From positions 1 to 64,000 of the forward strand of contig CAJFCJ010000021.1 of the NCBI GenBank assembly GCA_904063045.1: a DNA stretch of 64,000 bases, given 5' to 3'. The notes beneath the pieces were generated by a model. It did no database searches, had not been told where the DNA came from, and saw only the letters and a list, made by a program, of their open reading frames with translations. The translations under genes were made by a program, and so were the position numbers. Positions 1 through 10,552 of this stretch are shown here, one piece after another; position 1 is the first letter of the stretch; each line of letters starts with the position of its first letter. The stretch comes from Dimorphilus gyrociliatus. Its lineage: Eukaryota; Animalia; Annelida.

Positions 1-2436
1 AACTGGTTTAATATATGTGTACATGAATAACGTAAAGGTTAAAACAACTATTGGAAATTATTAATCGAAGTGTCAAAAGTAAAGGAGTTTGAAGGGTGAA
101 ATTCAAGTATTCAATATGTTATTCTATTTGGTAAGTTGAATGGCATATTATTAATTGGAATATAAGACCGGAACAAAGTTTGAATCGATGCCAAATTCAC
201 ACGAGCTTTTGAAAGCCGATTTACTTTGCAAGTCTAACATTCTCAATTATAGAGATTTTCTATTTTACGAAATTTATTACTTCTGGAACTCAATTACAGA
301 GATAAAAAGATAGCAAAAGTATTCTTTATTTTCTCAACTTATTTACCATATTAGTGTAACAATATATTGATCCGTAAGATTAGACGAATACAATGAATAC
401 GGTACAGAGATGGGAAGGGATGCGAGGGGGAGGGCGTAAGGGGAAAGGCTTCAGGGCTTGATTGTTTTAACTTGTTCGTAAACGCTACAGGGTAGCGAGG
501 TCAAAGGTATCTTATTTACCTAAATGAAATAAACATATTTATGTCAAAAGTCAACAGATTACTTTTCTAACCTTATTATTTATTTCATTTTTATATTCCA
601 ATTTGCATATAACAAAAAGCAAAGTCTATTGGGAAATATTTAATAGCTGTCTCTTTTGTCCCCTATAGTTGTCGGCCTATTTACATATGGATTAACTCTA
701 AATAGACTCTTAGAAAGAGATATACAGTATATATATAGATATATATATACATATATTATATATATATATATTTGTATATAGAAGTAACAAAATAACAAAT
801 AGTTTTGAGAGATATAAATAAAAAATACTATAATGCAGAAGGTATAAGGCTTTTTTTGTGTAGCCCACACCTGTCTGATGTTGATACTTTGCCCTTTTTC
901 CAATTTTGACTGTCAACAGTTATAGAGTCGGAATCTTTCTCTTCTCTGTATTTTTCTCCCTCCCTCTCTTATACTCTTTAGTATCTGCAAGCACTCTTTG
1001 TAAAGTATGAAGGCAGATTTCTTTTTCGATAGAATCCATATACGGTTTCTATCATTTCCGCTCTTTCTAGAAATTCAATATTTGAAAACTTTCAAAAAAA
1101 AAGAGAGAATCTAAAAGAATGAAGAAAGAGCAGAACTCGAATGATGATGATAGCTCTTTCGTATATTTTATAGGCTTATTATGTAATTTTATTCCTTGAG
1201 TCGACTTTTAAAACTTTCCCTTTCGCTCTTTCCTCCTCTCTCTCTCGCTCTGCCTTTCTGTCGATCGTTTTCTCTCCTTATTCGTATACTTACGCCTCCT
1301 CGTCTTTCCTTTCGAAAATGTCGAGTTGTCAATTAGAGCTGAGTGCAATCCTATTCATTGTCTAATTAGAGTAATACGTTAATTAAAAAAAGATGTTGCG
1401 TTTAATAAAAAAGAATGAAGGATTTCTTTAAATAATAGAAAGGGAAAGGGTATACTAATGGGCAATAAGCTGGTATGTATTGTTCTATTATCTCATATTT
1501 TGTTTTGTTGTTGATGATTAAGTTTAAGAAAATAGAGAAACTAAGAATTAAAAAGGGTAAATAACAATAGTTTTATTTTCAAAGGTAATCGTACTTCAGT
1601 CCTGCTGACTACCCCTTATATTTTCGAGTTAATCAAGCGCACAATCTTTTTCTTGCCTGTTGAAATCTACCGGAAGGGAGATGTACACGCCTTATTAATT
1701 TTCTTTTCATCCAGCATTTGATATATATTAATATTTAATATTTAATATTTAATAGTCTATGTTTCTATATTTAAAACCTAGTAACACGTTGTTTATAATT
1801 GTTCTTCTAATTGTATTTCCTATCAATATCGATCTTTTATATACATAATAATTTCTCTATATACAGAATATTAAACAAAAAATGAACAACAACAAAATTT
1901 CCATTAACATTTCACTAAAAAAAATATTCTAAGCGACTTTTTCGCCATCTATAGGCGGTGATTATTTTACATATATATGTATATATATATATAAGAAAAA
2001 GGTAATATATAACTAGAATTTTGTCTATATAACTATACTGTTTACCCACAAAATAATAATAATGAACAACAAGTCATCTTTAGGGAAATAATAAGTTAAA
2101 CTTGAGCACCATTGATGAAAAATAGTAGAAAAAAAAAGTTTTCAAGATTATAAGGAAAGTTTTCCAAGCTACTAAATAGTTGTTTTCTTCCTCTTTTTAT
2201 GTTTTAGTTCTTTTTTTTCCTTTCAAATATTTAAATTATAACTTTAATAATTTTTAAAAACAGTTTTCGCTTTCTTGAAATACCATCTTGATTATATTTC
2301 TCCTGACTTAATTGCCATGAATTTCATATATTGAAGATGGTGAAGAAGGATGCGTAGAGGATAGATAGATGGATGGATGGATGGACTGATGAATATATAG
2401 AGGCAGAGATTGCGAGAAGAAAACACAGACAGTCTT

Positions 2437-5400
2437 TCAGACGACGGAAGAGGGGAGAGGCAATGTTTCGTAAATATTCTCACATGGATTTGTTATTGGT
2501 AATCTAACGTATTCATTCTTAGCCAATCCATCTTCTTCTTGTCTGTTTAATTCTGATTCTAGAGCGGACAACTTGCTTGTGCCCTTGTCAATGATTAGCC
2601 AATAAACGTAGCCTAGTTTCTTTCCGTTATCTAAGGAGAAAAAAAATAGAAAATATAAATTAATCGTTTTTATCTAAGAATATATTATACTGATAAGTAA
2701 TCATATCTATGTACGACTATATACTGTATCCTTACAATATAAGGCTAGTTTATAAACATACAAAGAGTGAAAGAGAAAAAACTGGCGGGAGTTCTTTTAT
2801 TTTTTAATTAGCACCTTTAAAGAATTTCTTTTTTTACTCTTGAAGTAAATTTTTTTACACAATCGTAACAAAAAAAAAATCCTTCTTTTACTCTTCAATT
2901 CTTTCCCTCTGTCAAAATCCTCCCTCCTCCCACTTTCTCCGCCCACCTTCTCCACCAATCTTTAAAATTATTTAACTAAAATCTCATTTTCCCCCGTACT
3001 TATTATGTAATAAACAGGTGCCATTACCTAAAATACCAATTTAGAGAATAACAGGTAGTCAGAAGTAGATGACTATCGTCTTTTTGTTACTAAAGACATA
3101 ATAATCATCTTAACATTAAGAAAGAAAGAGAGAGAGGGAGAGAGAGAGAGGAGGGGAGGGAAAGAGCTAAACAAAGAAAAACAGTAATAAAACTTAAACA
3201 GACATAGAAAAAGTTTCAAAATACAGTTAAACATTTTATAGGCCAACAGAATGAATACTTTACTTAAATTTTATTCGGTTTTTGTGATTGTACAAGTATT
3301 AACGTTAAGCTTCGGTGTTGTAAAAATAAAATCTCCTAAATAGAGACTGGGCCTTTGATGAGAGGGTATAAAAAAAACTAAATACTATCTATTTATATCC
3401 CAATACAATACAAATTCTCATTCAATTCTATCTATCTATACCTTCTTATTTTTCTCCTCCTCCTCCTCCTCCTAAAACTTTTCTCTATTCTATAGTCCAA
3501 AGTTTTGTTCTCTTTGAACTTTCCCTCTTATTTTAATTTTGTTTTTCTTTTCGTGTTTTTGGCGGGAAGAAAACAAATTTGAGGTTTAAAAATAAATTAG
3601 GCGTTAACAATAGATAATAATAATAAAAAGGGAGGACTACAAATGATTTTGGAAAGATATAGAATAAGAGAAGCAAATTAGATGGTTTCACTTTAATCGT
3701 CGCCGATCGGCACCCGAGAACAAATTGCCGATGGCCATATAAACTTTCACGCCATTCGCAATTGCCTATTTAGGAAAAGATCAAAGTAAAACTAAATATT
3801 GAAGTAAAAACTTGTTCGTATTGATTTTAACGCAACTTTTAGCAAACACAACTAATCTCTTTATAAACCTTTTTTTATATATAAAAAAAAGAAATTAAGA
3901 AGAAAAGAAAAGAAAATATTCTGTCTATCTGTCTCCCTATTTCTTAACTTCCACCTTCGACGGCCCCCTCCCACTTCTCCTATTTCTATTCCCCACCCAA
4001 AGTTATACCTAACCCTTTTTATCGATAATTTTTTGTCTATATTGTTACAAATAACGGAAGGACCTGGAACAATCTAACCCATGCCGGTAGGGTTATTCAA
4101 ATCAATAACTATAAAATTCTATTGTTAAAATAATAAAAAAGGATGAAAACTTTTTAACTACTGTTATACTCATAATAGGGGAATAATGACCAAAAAAATG
4201 CACAACAGGTTACATTGAACCAATAAAAGTTTCGGTGTTGCCATAAATAAATAGGCAAGTAGAACCTATTTACATAAAAGTTATGGTTAACCAAGTACTC
4301 TTTATTGTTTATACACACTGTATGTGTATAAATATAATTGATAGGCCTAATTGCGGGTGAGAAAAGAGTGGGTGGGTAAGAAATAGAAAATAATAGATAT
4401 AGACAAAGATAGAAAAATGATTTTTTAAATTTCTTCTTGAAAAGTAGGAGGGGTACTAAGGGTTTCTCAGACATATATATTACTATACTGTATGTAGTCC
4501 TATTTACGCGTCTGATAATGCTCAATTGGTATTTTTTAGGTCTATTAATGTCTAAATAAATACCCTAGTGACGAGAGATAGTGTCCTATGGTAAAAAAGA
4601 TTGATAAAAAAAGTGAAAACTAAAGAAAATTGTCTATTTCGCGCCGAACCCGAAAATCGTTTTTAAATTATAATAGCGTGAGCTCGTAAATCGGTGCGAA
4701 ACGACATTTAGCGTTATTTTCTTTTGGTACCCCCCTCCCCTCTTCTCTCGTTGAACCCCCCACACTTCTTATTTCTTAAAAAACTCCACATGCCCCAATT
4801 CTCTATAAAGACCAATATAGTGCACCTGTCAGCCTTCTAGCCCCCGCTTATTTTATGCAGTTGTTTAACGAGTCTTGACCCATAGGCGAATCATTTTAAA
4901 TATCGCCATTTTTTTCATTCAAATACCTACTAAATATTTTCATATCTAAATTTATATACTTAAAACCTGTATCTATATATCTAATAATAACATATATATG
5001 TATATAATAATAGTAAATATGTACTTACTATCGTAGAAAGGTTGACACCGGCTTCTTAAAAATACGATGAGAAGAACGATGAACATAAGGCATAGCATTC
5101 CAATTGAAATTGGTATAATTGTATACACGTACCAGTAGGATGAATCTGTAACTAAAGTATAAAATTGATATAGTTATAAGAATTTTAATATATTTATATA
5201 TCTTTCATTTATATAAAAGGTTAAATCGCCCGCATAACATTTCGTATGAATTATGAAGCATCCTGTTCAAACATCCGTAAAAAAAAACATAAAGAATACA
5301 CTCTTTCGCATAGCTCTCCCATTTTTTTTTCTTTCCCTTCTCTTCTCTCTTTATCTCCCTTTGTCTATCTAAACCTAATATTTTCTCTGTCTACCTGATA

Positions 5401-7479
5401 ATTAACGAGGAAAATTTTTTGTAATTTGCTTTCTTTCCTACATAGACATCTCGTAATCCTATAATTAATTTCCAGAGAAAGAAAGAGACAGACAGAGAAA
5501 GAGAGAATAACGACAAAAAGCGTCTATTGTATTATTTTTTTTTTTTAAACTCTCTTCTAATCGTTGACCCTAAAACGCTTCTTTAATGGGCAACAGATTA
5601 TACTCGTTCATTCGTTTCTTCTCTCTATCCTTCTCCAATATATAAATAAAATATATTTTTAATAGTTATTCAATTTCCCAAAGATCTCTAATGTGCATTT
5701 TCTTTCCGCATCTGTCGAAATTACACAGGAAATATCAACTCAACCTCCCGCATTATCAAAAAAATTTTTGAGGTGGGATTTTTTTTATCAGACAATGGTT
5801 TGAAGAAAAAAAAACCTGCCTTCCGTCCTTACGAATTAATCTCGGGTAAGGGAAATTGAAAGGGGGGAAAAGACAACATTATGAAGTGGGGAGGATATTG
5901 AGAATAAGGATTTTTAGGGGTTGGGAGAAGGTAAAGGGAAATAAAGAGCTAGTATTACAACTTTTATTATATACAGGTATATAGAAGATAAAAGATTTGA
6001 ATGTGGTTATAAAACAAAGGAATATTCATTGTCTATTTATTGTATTATCTATATGGTTGTCTCCCAATATTCCTGAATATTTCGAAATATCGTCTATATT
6101 CAATAATGAGCGGAAAGCACAATACAAAGTGGCATTAATAGTATATCTTTTATGGTATATATATATATAAATTTATATATATTCACTGTACATATAAACG
6201 ATTATATAGATAATAGATTGAGAAGAGGAATAATAAAAACAATTGAGAAAAGTCAAGCCTAGGCCATTTCGGACGTGTTTGAGCTTGTACAACGATAAAC
6301 GATAGGCTGATTAGAAAAAGAATCAAAATGCGACAATGACAGTTGAATAGTTTAATTAGATAGTTTTATCTGTCTAATTGCCTTCATTTTCTCTTTTAAC
6401 CACATTAACCTATTAGTTGGTGGACAAACGATGGCTTAAATCTCAAGAGACACATTTCATACATCAAAAGAATTCTCGCGTGCCTTACGTAATCTTTCGT
6501 AATCTGAACGAGCGTACACACTAAGCGGTATCCTTTCTTCCTTCCCACTTTTTTTACACCAAATATATTTATATAGACGGGTAAATTAGTTGAAGAGAGT
6601 GAGAGGAGAGGAAGAAGAAGAAGAAAGAGAATGGAATCAAAACTAGGGGAAAGAGAGCAGCGAAAGCTAAGAATCTTAGGAATGCGACGCCTTTTAATGT
6701 AAGCGCGTGACAAAATGGAAAATAATACGATTTTACTACTTTTATCGCCTGTTTTATTCTTTGATTTTATGCTTCAATTATGACCGTTCGGTTGGACGAA
6801 TATTCGGAATGTACTCTTTTTTAACAGCGCGTGCCCCTTTTTAAATTCTTATCCATGAATAATTTGGTTAGTTATAAAGAATAAAAGGAGCAAAGGATAG
6901 TTTATAAGGGAAAGAGAGGGAAAGAAAGGTAAGGAATAAACGAGACCGTCAATACTACAGTATTAGTCACATTAAAAAAATATTTCAAAATACTTTACTT
7001 TATCTATATAATCTCACTTCCCCCTCCGCCCCCCCCTTAATTACACTTAAAGCCGCCCACTGCCACCCATTTTTTTGGTACTCGATAAAAACTGCTCTAC
7101 GTCTTGTTTTTTCCTATCTCTTAGCCAAAACATTTATAAATTTTTAAACGAATAAAAAATGAAGCTTACCTTGACGGATAGTTTGTTGTTGGAGATTTTC
7201 GTGAACTTTCAAATAATCTCTTACATAAGCCTTTGGAATACTACTTAAAATTTCATCAAAGTGACGGCAAATTGTTGGCACTCTTAGGTGTTCAATGCAT
7301 TTTAATACTTCGACAAAGTCCTTTTCGCAAGGTGTACATAATTTTTGGCAGCTTCTTTTAGCCGAATTATAATATTCATCGCTTGATGGACATCTTCTAG
7401 AGCTTAACGGATTTGAATCTACTAATTGTAATAGTAAGATTGTTAAGATAGCAACGCTGAAACAAACGCTTCTATTCAT
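2437..7479 (-). CDS. Predicted type I membrane receptor: signal peptide, one TNFR-like Cys-rich domain, TM helix, Tyr-motif tail. Exons 7479-7170, 5145-5029, optional 3765-3692, terminal 2612 (or 2583)-2437
   Basis: Exon 1 encodes MNRSVCFSVAILTILLLQLVDS (signal peptide) then CPSSDEYYNSAKRSCQKLCTPC...C...C and ends at CAAG|GTAAGC (phase 1). A 117-nt phase-1 symmetric exon (TTACAG| ... |GTAAGT) encodes DSSYWYVYTIIPISIGMLCLMFIVLLIVFLRSRCQPFYD, a clear TM. The terminal exon is open in the matching phase: ...NEYVRLPITNPCENIYETLPLPSSVV*. Linkage of exons is inferred from phase. Confidence 0.6.
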
Positions 7480-8988
7480 GATGATTTCTTTTCTTTTTCT
7501 CCTTGTCTTTCTTTCAAATTTCTATGTCGATTTGCGACCTTTCACTTTCCACTTTCCGTTTAATACTGAGAGTTCAATCGCGGGGAAGTTGACGGAGACT
7601 GTACTTGTCTGGACTTGCCCGGCTCAGCGGAATGAGAGTATAAGGCGCGTAATCGGGCCAATCAGCTGTAAGTAGCGGTCAAAACGGCAACCAACCAGCT
7701 TTCTCCTCTTTCTGAGCAATAGATGGCGGTAAGTATCTCTGTAAAAATTGTTTCCGACGATTACAGAGCGACCTCTATAGTAATTATAGGATATTTTTTA
7801 AATTGGAATAAATGATTAAAAGAAACAAATATGCACATAGAATACAATTATTCTTTTTTTACCATTAGATAAAAAAAACAATGTATACCTGAAATTTTGT
7901 ATCGTTTCTAAAGGAAAAAAAACTGGTGTTATCTTTTGCATGAGGTTTACAACATATGACACTACTCAAGAAAAAAAAACAGGAAAAAAATGTTGTTACA
8001 AATTATCAGAGAGTATAACGTGATGAAAAGAATTTTAAAAGGGACAAATGTTCCAAACTTTCAAGTGACAAGCACTTCCCTAACTACTGGTTGAAATTCT
8101 AAACCCCATTTCGAAGAAAAGACCCTTGGAGTTAACCGCGTGATATCTTCGCTTATTCACCGTTACAACAATTTGACCACATACCGTCTGTCAGTCTGTC
8201 AAAAGAAAATGACTTGTTACGTAATAACGCGAAATAAAATATTTCAACCTAGACGCGAACAAGGCAGTTGTCAAGAGACAAGAAGGGATAATTGGCGTGG
8301 GGAGGAGACATCGTATTGTAAGGCAATGGTTCGTGCTAATGCACATTATCATACATTTTTACCCTTATGTTCCGGATGTATCCTAGTGTTTTGTCTATCG
8401 AAAGAACGCAATGAGGCGATTTATAGGGTTCCTACTTATAGAATCTCCTCCCTCTCCCCCTTTTCTCTATAATGATACAAGGGAAAATCGTATGGGAATA
8501 CATCGCCCCAGTACCCCTTGCCTCCTATAAAGAATCTGTTCGTGATAAACTACTGTCTGTCTTTAATTTTATCTTTCTTTACACCCCTCTCCTACATCTT
8601 CGTTACATAATTCTCACGACTTTCACTCTAATTTTCGAGATAAATCAGCAACCTTTTGCTTATCATCCAACCACTTCAACTATACCTTCTTTGTACCAGT
8701 TTTTTTAATAATATTTTCAGAGGTTAATTTCCATAATTCACTTTTTCTTAATATGATTTAGCAATCTATTTGCTGCTATACTTTTACTACAAGTCTCTCT
8801 CTCTCTTTCTATATACTAATATGTAAATTATACATATAAAGAGATTTAAGAAAGGATCACGCCATACCAGTTACGGTTGTCAAAATAAATTGAAGAAAAC
8901 CTATAAAATTGGGAAAGGTAGATGCAGTAGGAAAATCTAAATTAAAAAAAGTAAAAAGAAAGTAAAAAGGCTTGTTGCAAATAAGAAA

Positions 8989-9074
8989 ATGTCAGCCTCT
9001 GAGAGTAAGCCCATTGTTTTTTTGTAAAGAGTTTTTATGTAAGGATGGTAATTTCTTCCTCTTGATAAAGTATG

Positions 9075-9112
<38 letters not shown>

Positions 9113-10552
9113 ATATATTATGGTAGTATGTGTATTATATTATCAGTAATTAAATGATTAATAAATAGGAGATTTCGACAAATTCTTCGCGAAACCAGTG
9201 GAAAATTACTACATTAGTTTGTATAATTAATTACAACTGAAATATGAATATTTAAAATATATATTAATTATTGTTATTTTATTATAATATTTTTATAGTT
9301 GCTGATTTTGAGAATTTATTAAGGAAGCATAAAAATTATTTCATAAGGAGATTTAACGATTTCTTTAAGATTTTGGATAATCTACCAAACAGTGCCACAG
9401 ATTCTTCAAGCCTTGAATCTGGTTTACTCTTTACACTTCTAGGTTGTATAAGATCTCTTGTATCTTGTGATGGAAAGGTACGATAGTATAGATAACATTT
9501 TATTGGGTCATTTATTAAATAAATAGACCATTTTCCCACTGTAGATCTTAACAGAAAAGCACATAAAGTCACTAACGACACTTGGAAAAAATTCTCAATG
9601 TCCTAATATGACTAGTTCTTTAATAGGATGTATATTTTATTCTGTTTGCAATGTACAATACAAAATACTCGACTCTTTTGCTGAAGATTTAAAGTTACTG
9701 GCAGACAGCGATATTAATAGCGCTTGTCAGTACAGCATGATTTTTGGCATGATTGGCTGCGAAGTTGATCAGGTATATTAAAATGAAAAAACATAAATAT
9801 AGTAAAACTAGCTAAAGGCAAAGATATGATAGGAGATTAGAGAGTGTCAAGAGAGAAAGAGAGAGAAAGAGAGTATGTGTATAAATACGTAGTTGGTAGG
9901 CAAATATCTATATGATTGTTTGACAAAGAGAAGAGGAAAACTATACAGTATAATTTGATTGTCTTTTAGAATAGAGCCAGACTATACGCAGGCTATATCA
10001 TTGAGTTTCTGCAAACCAGTCCAAATATCTACCTAAGTGGTATAGTTTACTACTTACTACAATTGGTCAATACGTATGTATCTTTTAAGTATACATCAAT
10101 TTTTTTCAAGAGCTCTTGAATAATAAACACAGACATCCTACTATCGCTAAGGAGAGGAAGAATGATGTTGAAGAATTATCAAAGAATCCCGCCATGAGGG
10201 ATACTTGCCAGAGTATTTTACAAATAGCCAGTAATACAACGTTAGTATAGCCTACTTACTTCCTTATAGTTATGACTATGATGTTTGTTTTAATCCTCTA
10301 TAAAACAGGGTTAATAACCTCGCAACAAGGGTAGAAAAGTTAGAAAAGGATTTTTCTGATATGCCCCCATTGTTTAAAAAGGAAGAAGAGTTTAACAAGA
10401 TACTAAAGAATTTTGAAGATAGAATGATAAAAAAATTAGGAAATTCTGTTAAGGAGAACATTCGAAATGAAGTTGAGCAATTAAGAAAAGATCTTCTATC
10501 CATAAAAATCTCTAATATGGACGACTTAAAAGCAAACGCTAATAAATCATAA
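8989..10552 (+). CDS. Uncharacterised helical protein resembling the Melted/VEPH1 N-terminal helical region plus a C-terminal coiled coil, no PH domain. Exons about 8989-9004, 9169-9216, 9299-9477, 9545-9772, 9970-~10039, 10111-10240, 10309-10552
   Basis: Chain of GT-AG flanked, phase-compatible open exons. Segment ILDSFAEDLKLLADSDINSACQYSMIFGMIGCEVDQNRARLYAGYIIEFL resembles recalled VEPH1 ALNSFLPMLKEIGERFPYLTGQMARIYGAVGHVDEERARSCLTYLVSQL. The start exon and the exon 5 donor are uncertain. Confidence 0.55.
9076..9109. repeat. (TA)n microsatellite
   Basis: Perfect TA run. Confidence 0.95.

Follow-up and report, generated by a model that had tools for sequence, protein, structure and literature searches.

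Does the cysteine-rich open reading frame in this annelid contig belong to a hidden receptor gene and, if it does, is that receptor related to the TNF receptors (TNFRs)? The sequence examined, referred to here as the window, is a 64,000 nt stretch of Dimorphilus gyrociliatus DNA (positions 1 to 64,000, forward strand, of contig CAJFCJ010000021.1 in GenBank assembly GCA_904063045.1). The open reading frame spans 7144–7479 on the minus strand, and a preliminary description made from the sequence alone read its first part as exon 1 of a four-exon, TNFR-like single-pass receptor. The explanation that we consider best when taken whole is a three-exon gene whose product carries a module of the TNFR CRD type and would be a ligand-clustered receptor with an adaptor-docking tail, and we put its probability at roughly one half.

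Gene structure

As judged from splice signals, reading frames and comparison with a sister species, three exons on the minus strand (7479–7170, 5145–5029 and 2630–2437) make up a real gene that is apparently unannotated, and the predicted product is a 206-residue type I single-pass membrane protein. The features of the locus are:

7170–7479, minus strand: exon 1, with the start codon (7477–7479), a signal peptide (approximately residues 1–22), the six-Cys module and a stalk
7267–7392, minus strand: Cys-rich module, residues 30–71, C-x13-C-x3-C-x2-C-x9-C-x9-C
5146–7169, minus strand: intron 1, 2024 nt, holding a 97 % conserved single-copy block at approximately 6672–6810
5029–5145, minus strand: exon 2, a juxtamembrane stretch and the TM helix, then R-S-R-C-Q-P-F-Y-D; phase 1 at both ends
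2631–5028, minus strand: intron 2, 2398 nt, with conserved blocks at approximately 4780–4890 and at 3655–3803
3655–3803, minus strand: conserved structured element enclosing 3692–3765, the 'exon 3' of the preliminary description
2437–2630, minus strand: exon 3 (tail), phase 1, with 64 codons ahead of the stop codon (2437–2439)
2461–2511, minus strand: tail motif in which nine residues separate Y-V-R-L from Y-E-T-L, with an overlapping P-x-E-N-I-Y; positions identical in both species

The exon 1 donor, GTAAG, lies immediately after 7170 in phase 1, exon 2 is bordered by an acceptor ending in ttacag and a donor beginning with gtaagt, and a strong acceptor (ending in ttctccttag) precedes 2630, within an open frame that runs from 2673 through the tail exon. 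When the three exons are joined, the frame is open over 207 codons, counting the stop; the joined protein was assembled in scripts only, and its frame, length, Cys positions and hydropathy were checked. Two hydrophobic segments were found, residues 1–23 and approximately 107–140, the second followed by R-S-R. The predicted layout runs from a signal peptide through a single six-Cys module and a stalk of some 35 residues to a TM helix with a juxtamembrane Cys and a tail of about 73 residues. The signal peptide and the six-Cys module with the spacing originally given were both recovered in exon 1, which has a hydrophobic, signal-like N-terminus, and the terminal coding stretch does end at the stop codon 2437–2439. 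Introns of about 2 kb are out of the ordinary in the compact D. gyrociliatus genome, a point that weighs against the proposed gene.

Conservation in a sister species

The comparison was made with L002, a single contig from a sister species that is colinear with the window; agreement between the two species does not count as two independent observations. The exon 1 proteins share 66 % amino acid identity, and there are no indels in any of the three exons. For exon 1, omega is 0.19, while its off-frames give values of about 1 and include 7–10 stops. The TM exon has an omega of 0.06 (14.5 synonymous versus 5.5 conservative non-synonymous differences), likewise with values of about 1 and stops in its off-frames, and in the tail exon pS is 0.77 versus a pN of 0.23, with 5–6 stops in the off-frames. 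Both donors and both acceptors, including the AG before 2630, are kept in the sister species, where the TM exon lies at L002 7423–7539, and all six Cys of the module are invariant across the two species. An alternative exon 1 donor at 7225 (phase 0) is absent from the sister species and was rejected. On these substitution patterns, the corrected three-exon frame is judged to be under clear purifying selection. The phase-1 link from exon 1 to the TM exon (5145–5029) that had been proposed is borne out by the conserved splice sites, and the comparative evidence also backs the wider picture of a hidden multi-exon gene whose TM exon is clean and whose short tail is conserved and free of a death domain, none having been found in Pfam scans of either species.

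Conserved elements in the introns

The ultra-conserved intronic blocks exceed the coding exons in conservation and are a separate lead on regulation. The element at 3655–3803 is single copy and, including its flanks, shares 88.6 % identity with the sister species across 140 ungapped nt. Sequence lying upstream of the AG base-pairs with the donor region to form a 13-bp stem (z −2.5), and 33 of 33 pairs in the element are retained in both species, four of them by one-sided changes. Rfam gave no match over positions 1–9500, and no excess RNA structure was found in the 97 % conserved block of intron 1.

The preliminary description had taken 74 nt of this element (3765–3692) as a coding exon. However, in the sister species codon 5 of the frame proposed for it is TAG. 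The segment at 3692–3765 lies outside the conserved reading frame, and may be either a frame-breaking cassette exon or a structured intronic RNA element. A main product of four exons, in which exon 1 and the TM exon are followed by 3765–3692 and then by an acceptor at 2583 to give a 215-aa protein, is hardly credible, though the frame is open in D. gyrociliatus, the segment has AG/GT borders at 3765/3692, and both it and its flanks are highly conserved. In addition to the TAG, the site at 2583 is without a pyrimidine tract and the AG before it is missing in the sister species, where the conserved acceptor is that at 2630. The stretch 2630–2584, which would be intron, is conserved as protein (G-K-K-[LV]-G-Y-V-Y-W-L-I, upstream of the 2583 site) through synonymous changes, and joining the element to the real acceptor at 2630 leads to a stop after 5 codons. 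The other acceptor put forward, 2612, also runs into a stop after 5 codons. Exon 1 and the TM exon of the four-exon model stand, and its last two junctions do not.

Searches for relatives and products

A HMMER search of 1.84 billion representatives returned only the sister-species protein P0001, together with two repeat-protein artefacts that had no aligned stretch. In word-index protein searches, the 125-aa open frame around exon 1 (region 15–117; lengths 69–219 aa) had no match and P0001 (lengths 144–458 aa) matched only itself, and a protein atlas gave no usable match. Paralogue searches of the D. gyrociliatus genome, using the protein and a profile, likewise found only the gene itself, weak matches to an EMG1-like ORF and an acetyl-CoA-transporter-like ORF being spurious. 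No spliced or annotated protein from either species was present in the databases searched.

The failure of these searches to find a transcript or annotated protein, and the fact that gene callers in the sister species read on past the exon 1 donor (P0001, P0004), would fit a secreted 111-aa Cys-rich peptide encoded by exon 1 alone and read to the stop at 7144, or a locus that is non-functional. We consider this very improbable. In the sister species, ORFs of 262 and 325 aa read through across intron 1; they were rejected as coding sequence because the D. gyrociliatus frame reaches a stop after 8 codons and similarity in this region is seen in all six frames. The read-through is not conserved as protein. 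Moreover, the TM and tail exons are strongly constrained in exactly those phases that the conserved donors dictate, which is not expected of unused sequence.

Likeness of the module to TNFRs

The six Cys of the module are Cys30, 44, 48, 51, 61 and 71, and the core is D-E-Y-Y-N. TNFR_c6 (PF00020) was the best Pfam family in both species and the sole one in three of four scans, at scores of 14–16.3 bits (E 0.013–0.085) versus a cut-off of 29.4, and exon 1 was not among the 53 TNFR_c6 matches of a genome-wide scan. In the classical TNFR pattern the gap between C2 and C3 is 0–2. A PROSITE-type TNFR pattern fails in its strict form and fits the module of both species when a C2–C3 gap of 3 is permitted. 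Searches of PDB sequences with the single sequence or with a two-sequence profile gave chance matches only and no TNFR. A PRC-barrel match on the tail (E 0.0055) was below the cut-off and missing in the sister species, and was put down to chance.

An AF2 model of residues 24–80 is of low confidence (pLDDT 56.5, pTM 0.31) and contains beta hairpins; a model of the whole of exon 1 (pLDDT 45, mostly helical) was discarded. In Foldseek, about 35 of the 41 matches to the residue 24–80 model at E<=10 belong to the TNFR superfamily, with a best E of 0.54, and the match to DR5 covers 48 columns (TMq 0.60, rmsd 2.4). In a structure-only search of 48,161 chains with VIA-align, 12 chains reached Z>=2, 3.5 being the highest value, and all 12 are TNFRs. 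The chains matched by fold are canonical CRDs (DR5, DR4, 4-1BB, RANK and TNFR1/2), and those of BCMA, TACI, BAFF-R and Grindelwald were absent from the fold matches of both searches. A TNFR-type fold of the module is weakly shown by the model. The AlphaFold and Foldseek check suggested at the outset yielded the TNFR neighbours, from a low-confidence model. Overall, the data are consistent, at scores below threshold, with a module of the TNFR CRD type that is closest to the canonical A1-B2 pattern and unlike Grindelwald, BCMA or TACI. As the best reading available, TNFR likeness is partly supported: the family and fold neighbours uphold the original claim, and every test either falls below its threshold or uses the model with a pLDDT of 56.

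The tail and proposed signalling

The predicted topology, a signal peptide and a TM helix followed by R-S-R and a candidate adaptor-binding tail, is that of a receptor. YVRL-x9-YETL and PxENIY are unchanged between the two species, and P-x-E-N-I-Y, which matches the TRAF6 consensus in both, is a putative docking site. The genome encodes TNF ligand domains (PF00229) at at least 7 places, C5:1211559–1212937 and C3:923188–923358 among them, and TRAF MATH domains at at least 7 loci, one example being the genes at C19:1134715–1138526. A TNF-family ligand, of which several are genome-encoded, would as a trimer bind the single CRD in its grooves. Clustering of the receptor would then draw adaptors to N-E-Y-V-R-L-P-x-x-N-P-x-E-N-I-Y-E-T-L-P-L-P, the part of the tail that is invariant, via the TRAF6-type P-x-E-x-x-Y, via the pair of phosphorylatable YxxL sites, or by both routes. 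Which ligand and adaptors this receptor uses, and its expression, are matters that we infer only.

The gene could also be real and its module no homologue of the TNFRs. It would then encode a small receptor, specific to the lineage and acting in immunity or adhesion, that is ITAM-like and binds a non-TNF ligand; phosphorylation of YVRL and YETL by a Src-family kinase would recruit a Syk/Shark-type kinase with tandem SH2 domains. This is a possibility to be taken seriously, albeit less probable than the TNFR reading, as every line of evidence for the latter is sub-threshold, no sequence relative was found outside the sister species, and the dual YxxL is the most conserved feature of the tail. 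Against it, all structural neighbours of the model are TNFRs, TNFR_c6 came top wherever Pfam gave a match, the YxxL spacing of 9 is just beyond the classical range and the same tail segment also matches PxExx[aromatic]. A combination, in which a TNFR-fold ectodomain and an ITAM-like dual-YxxL tail allow a TNF-family cytokine to signal via a Syk/Shark-type kinase, with or without TRAF6, gated by an RNA-structure-enclosed 74-nt cassette exon (3765–3692) that, when included, would cost the protein its tail in both species, seems to us quite unlikely.

If the fold and ligand binding of the TNFR reading are true, the gene would be an unannotated, fast-evolving and lineage-restricted addition to the annelid single-CRD TNF receptors, with a CRD of the canonical rather than the Grindelwald type and a tail uniting a TRAF6-type site with two YxxL motifs. 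The gene offers a defined candidate that can be paired with the few TNF ligands of this species, and it shows that annotation of this compact genome misses small receptor genes made of several exons and long introns.

Comparison with known systems

The predicted protein shares with canonical TNFRs six Cys in A1-B2-like spacing, a first loop that contains an aromatic residue, and type I topology. However, canonical TNFRs have three or four CRDs where the worm protein has one, and the worm module has a C2–C3 gap of 3, no associated death domain, a score far below the family cut-off and no detectable sequence relative. With ITAM receptors such as Draper and the Fc receptor gamma chain it shares two adjacent YxxL motifs in a short tail, but the spacing is 9, whereas classical ITAMs have 6–8 between the YxxL/I motifs. 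Dual YxxL motifs are not usual in TNFR tails, and no ITAM-bearing receptor is known to have a TNFR-type ectodomain.

BCMA, TACI, BAFF-R and Fn14 are mostly of type III and lack a signal peptide. Like the worm protein, these receptors (CRD2 in the case of TACI) have one small CRD, a short stalk and a short tail, which in them is TRAF-binding. They are characterised by a DxL hairpin motif and a short C5–C6 spacing of x2–3 (PMC8024323), whereas the worm hairpin is D-E-Y-Y-N and its C5–C6 spacing is x9. Drosophila Grindelwald and the grnd-like single-CRD invertebrate receptors are similar in overall architecture, with a signal peptide, single CRD, TM helix and a short tail to which a TRAF6-type adaptor binds (in flies, Traf2), and without a death domain (PMC8024323; bioRxiv 10.1101/2024.07.27.603686). 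Grindelwald and the grnd-like receptors have eight Cys in X2 and C2 modules with a CxxCxxxC signature (PMC8024323; bioRxiv 10.1101/2024.07.27.603686). With six Cys instead of eight, CxxxCxxC instead of CxxCxxxC, no DxL and none of those chains among the fold matches, the likeness to BCMA, TACI, BAFF-R and Grindelwald drawn in the preliminary description is not supported. The receptor was there called undescribed, which holds for the gene itself, for which no protein was found in the databases, but not for its class: there is already a description of TNFR-like receptors with a single CRD that have expanded in annelids, including an expansion of grnd-like single-CRD invertebrate receptors in Capitella (bioRxiv 10.1101/2024.07.27.603686). 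The gene is a plausible further member of this known receptor class rather than a new kind of system.

Exon structure and coding potential

The locus lies in AT-rich DNA (GC of the window approximately 31 %) of a 78 Mb assembly. The features of the gene and of its predicted product are as follows.

Features of the locus (window coordinates) and of the predicted protein
7479–7144, minus strand: ORF with exon 1 (7479–7170), hydrophobic signal-like start followed by six Cys
Directly after base 7170, minus strand: exon 1 donor GTAAG, phase 1
5145–5029, minus strand: TM exon, bordered by ..ttacag and gtaagt, phase 1
3655–3803, minus strand: conserved element, 140 ungapped nt, enclosing a 74-nt AG...GT unit
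Before 2630, minus strand: strong tail exon acceptor ..ttctccttag, conserved in the sister species
2673 to stop at 2437–2439, minus strand: last open frame, containing the tail exon (2630–2437)
Approximately 22 residues: predicted signal peptide, small residues at -3 and -1 (V-D-S)
Residues 30–71: Cys module, C-x13-C-x3-C-x2-C-x9-C-x9-C around a D-E-Y-Y-N core
Between Cys module and TM helix: conserved stalk
From the TM exon: TM helix and juxtamembrane Cys (R-S-R-C after the helix)
Approximately 73 residues: conserved, motif-bearing tail

The exon structure in the preliminary description, which ran from exon 1 through the TM exon and a 74-nt exon (3765–3692) to an acceptor at 2583, needed correcting. 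The spacing and core of the six Cys in the ORF at 7479–7144 are exactly as it gave them, and the phase-1 intron between the donor after 7170 and the acceptor at 5145 held up, the splice sites of the TM exon being conserved. The last two junctions fail the conservation test that the three exons pass, namely comparison with L002, a 13.3 kb sister-species contig colinear with window 8900–270 (minus strand). There, the AG preceding 2583 is absent, the 74-nt element has a TAG in the proposed frame, and 2630–2584, previously taken as intron, shows protein-level conservation (G-K-K-[LV]-G-Y-V-Y-W-L-I) with synonymous changes; the acceptor before 2630 is conserved. In phase 1 the TM exon specifies a hydrophobic helix of 22 residues and, after it, R-S-R-C-Q-P-F-Y-D. 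When this exon is joined straight to 2630, the frame remains uninterrupted for 206 aa and a stop; this spliced join was built in scripts to check frame and hydropathy, and the exons were searched separately.

An exhaustive HMMER search of 1.84 billion representative sequences with exon 1 recovered one real relative, P0001 (66 % identity over residues 1–103), an ORF call on Logan contigs of another species that runs past the exon 1 donor. Between the species, exon 1 has an omega of 0.19, no indels and six invariant Cys. The TM exon retains both splice sites in L002, with 14.5 synonymous versus 5.5 conservative non-synonymous differences (omega 0.06), and the tail exon has pS 0.77, pN 0.23 and no indels. 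Every off-frame control gave an omega of approximately 1 and stops. Given this constraint, the conserved sites and the off-frame controls, all three exons are coding in the predicted phases, and the comparison shows a three-exon gene whose predicted product, a type I membrane protein, has a single Cys-rich module and a conserved tail with motifs. No spliced or annotated product from either species was found in the protein collections searched, hence the gene appears to be unannotated, and searches of the genome with the protein and a profile found no paralogue. Judged from sequence, the locus is a small receptor gene that is real, fast-evolving and apparently unannotated.

Between the two species, the tail segment N-E-Y-V-R-L-P-x-x-N-P-x-E-N-I-Y-E-T-L-P-L-P differs only at the x positions; it includes YVRL-x9-YETL and P-x-E-N-I-Y, the latter matching the TRAF6 consensus P-x-E-x-x-aromatic/acidic. 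Pfam finds no death domain, as had been described. The C-terminus S-S-V-V (window 2437–2448) fits a class I PDZ ligand, while V-A-N-V in the sister species does not; Grindelwald binds the PDZ protein Veli.

Conserved segments outside the coding exons

Over the whole of the approximately 1 kb 5′ of the start codon (7500–8600), identity to the sister species is about 80 %; the comparison showed no open frame conserved between the two, and the segment may be a promoter, 5′ UTR or non-coding transcript. In intron 1, a single-copy block at 6672–6810 is approximately 97 % identical, far more conserved than synonymous sites in the exons on either side (pS 0.6), and has no coding signal, Rfam match or excess RNA folding on either strand. 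A block in intron 2 (4780–4890) is approximately 90 % identical and has no clean coding frame. In the sister species (L002:5126–5914 and the contig of P0004, a second read-through ORF call), the exon 1 frame stays open across intron 1 for 262 or 325 codons, which is unlikely by chance in AT-rich DNA, yet it lacks protein conservation; in D. gyrociliatus this frame meets a stop 8 codons past the donor.

The single-copy element at 3655–3803 ranks third in conservation at the locus (88.6 % identity over 140 ungapped nt, flanks included). On the gene strand, sequence just upstream of the AG pairs with the donor region in a predicted 13-bp stem (fold z-score -2.5; 2 of 200 shuffles fold equally well), and all 33 predicted pairs are retained in both species, four via one-sided wobble-compatible changes. 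As two sequences only were compared, this is suggestive of RNA structure. The 74-nt length is not divisible by three, and inclusion would lead to a frameshift and a stop after 5 codons in D. gyrociliatus and to an internal TAG in the sister species, so that the predicted protein would end before the conserved tail in both. The element may act as a cassette exon whose regulated inclusion removes the tail, or may simply be an RNA structure within the intron.

Nature of the cysteine module

Assignment of the module to the TNFRs is still sub-threshold. TNFR_c6 was the top Pfam match in both species, whether the scan took in all of the exon or just the module, and the sole match in three of four scans, though its scores (E 0.013–0.085, 14–16 bits) are below the 29.4-bit cut-off and the two species are non-independent witnesses. 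The classical TNFR signature has a C2–C3 gap of 0–2, and the module matches it once a gap of 3 is allowed. A whole-exon AF2 model was useless and set aside. That of residues 24–80, built from a two-sequence alignment, places beta hairpins at A1-module positions with low confidence (pLDDT 56.5). In the proposed Foldseek check nothing matched at E≤0.001, and at E≤10 TNFR-superfamily chains made up approximately 35 of 41 matches (DR5: TMq 0.60, rmsd 2.4, 48 columns). When 48,161 representative chains were searched by structure alone, all 12 matches at Z≥2 were TNFRs (DR5, 4-1BB, RANK, DR6, GITR, TNFR2 and TNFR1), with a best Z of 3.5, too low for significance alone.

The main rival is that the gene is real, its tail ITAM-like and its module not homologous to TNFRs. 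The paired YVRL-x9-YETL tyrosines would suit this, and no sequence method (the HMMER search and PDB sequence searches) linked the protein to known TNFRs; the recurrence of TNFRs among the Pfam and structural matches argues for the other view. We place the probability of a TNFR-type fold at roughly 0.6. With such a fold, the CRD would dock on a TNF-family ligand trimer, and the tails, once clustered, could recruit a TRAF6-type adaptor at P-x-E-N-I-Y. The tyrosine of this motif, like the YVRL upstream of it, may also undergo phosphorylation and serve as a docking site for SH2 proteins. Ligand and adaptors are available, since the genome encodes TNF-homology domains in at least seven places, with a tandem pair on contig C5 among them, and TRAF MATH domains at at least seven loci.

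Comparison with known receptors

The likeness to Grindelwald that had been proposed was not upheld. Grindelwald has 8 Cys in X2 and C2 modules (PMC8024323), whereas the D. gyrociliatus module has six with other spacing, and it differs from grnd-like receptors in lacking their CxxCxxxC signature (bioRxiv 10.1101/2024.07.27.603686). The module instead resembles canonical CRDs. On the best reading, the gene adds one more member to the TNFR-like single-CRD receptors, a class that is not itself new and of which annelids are known to have many.
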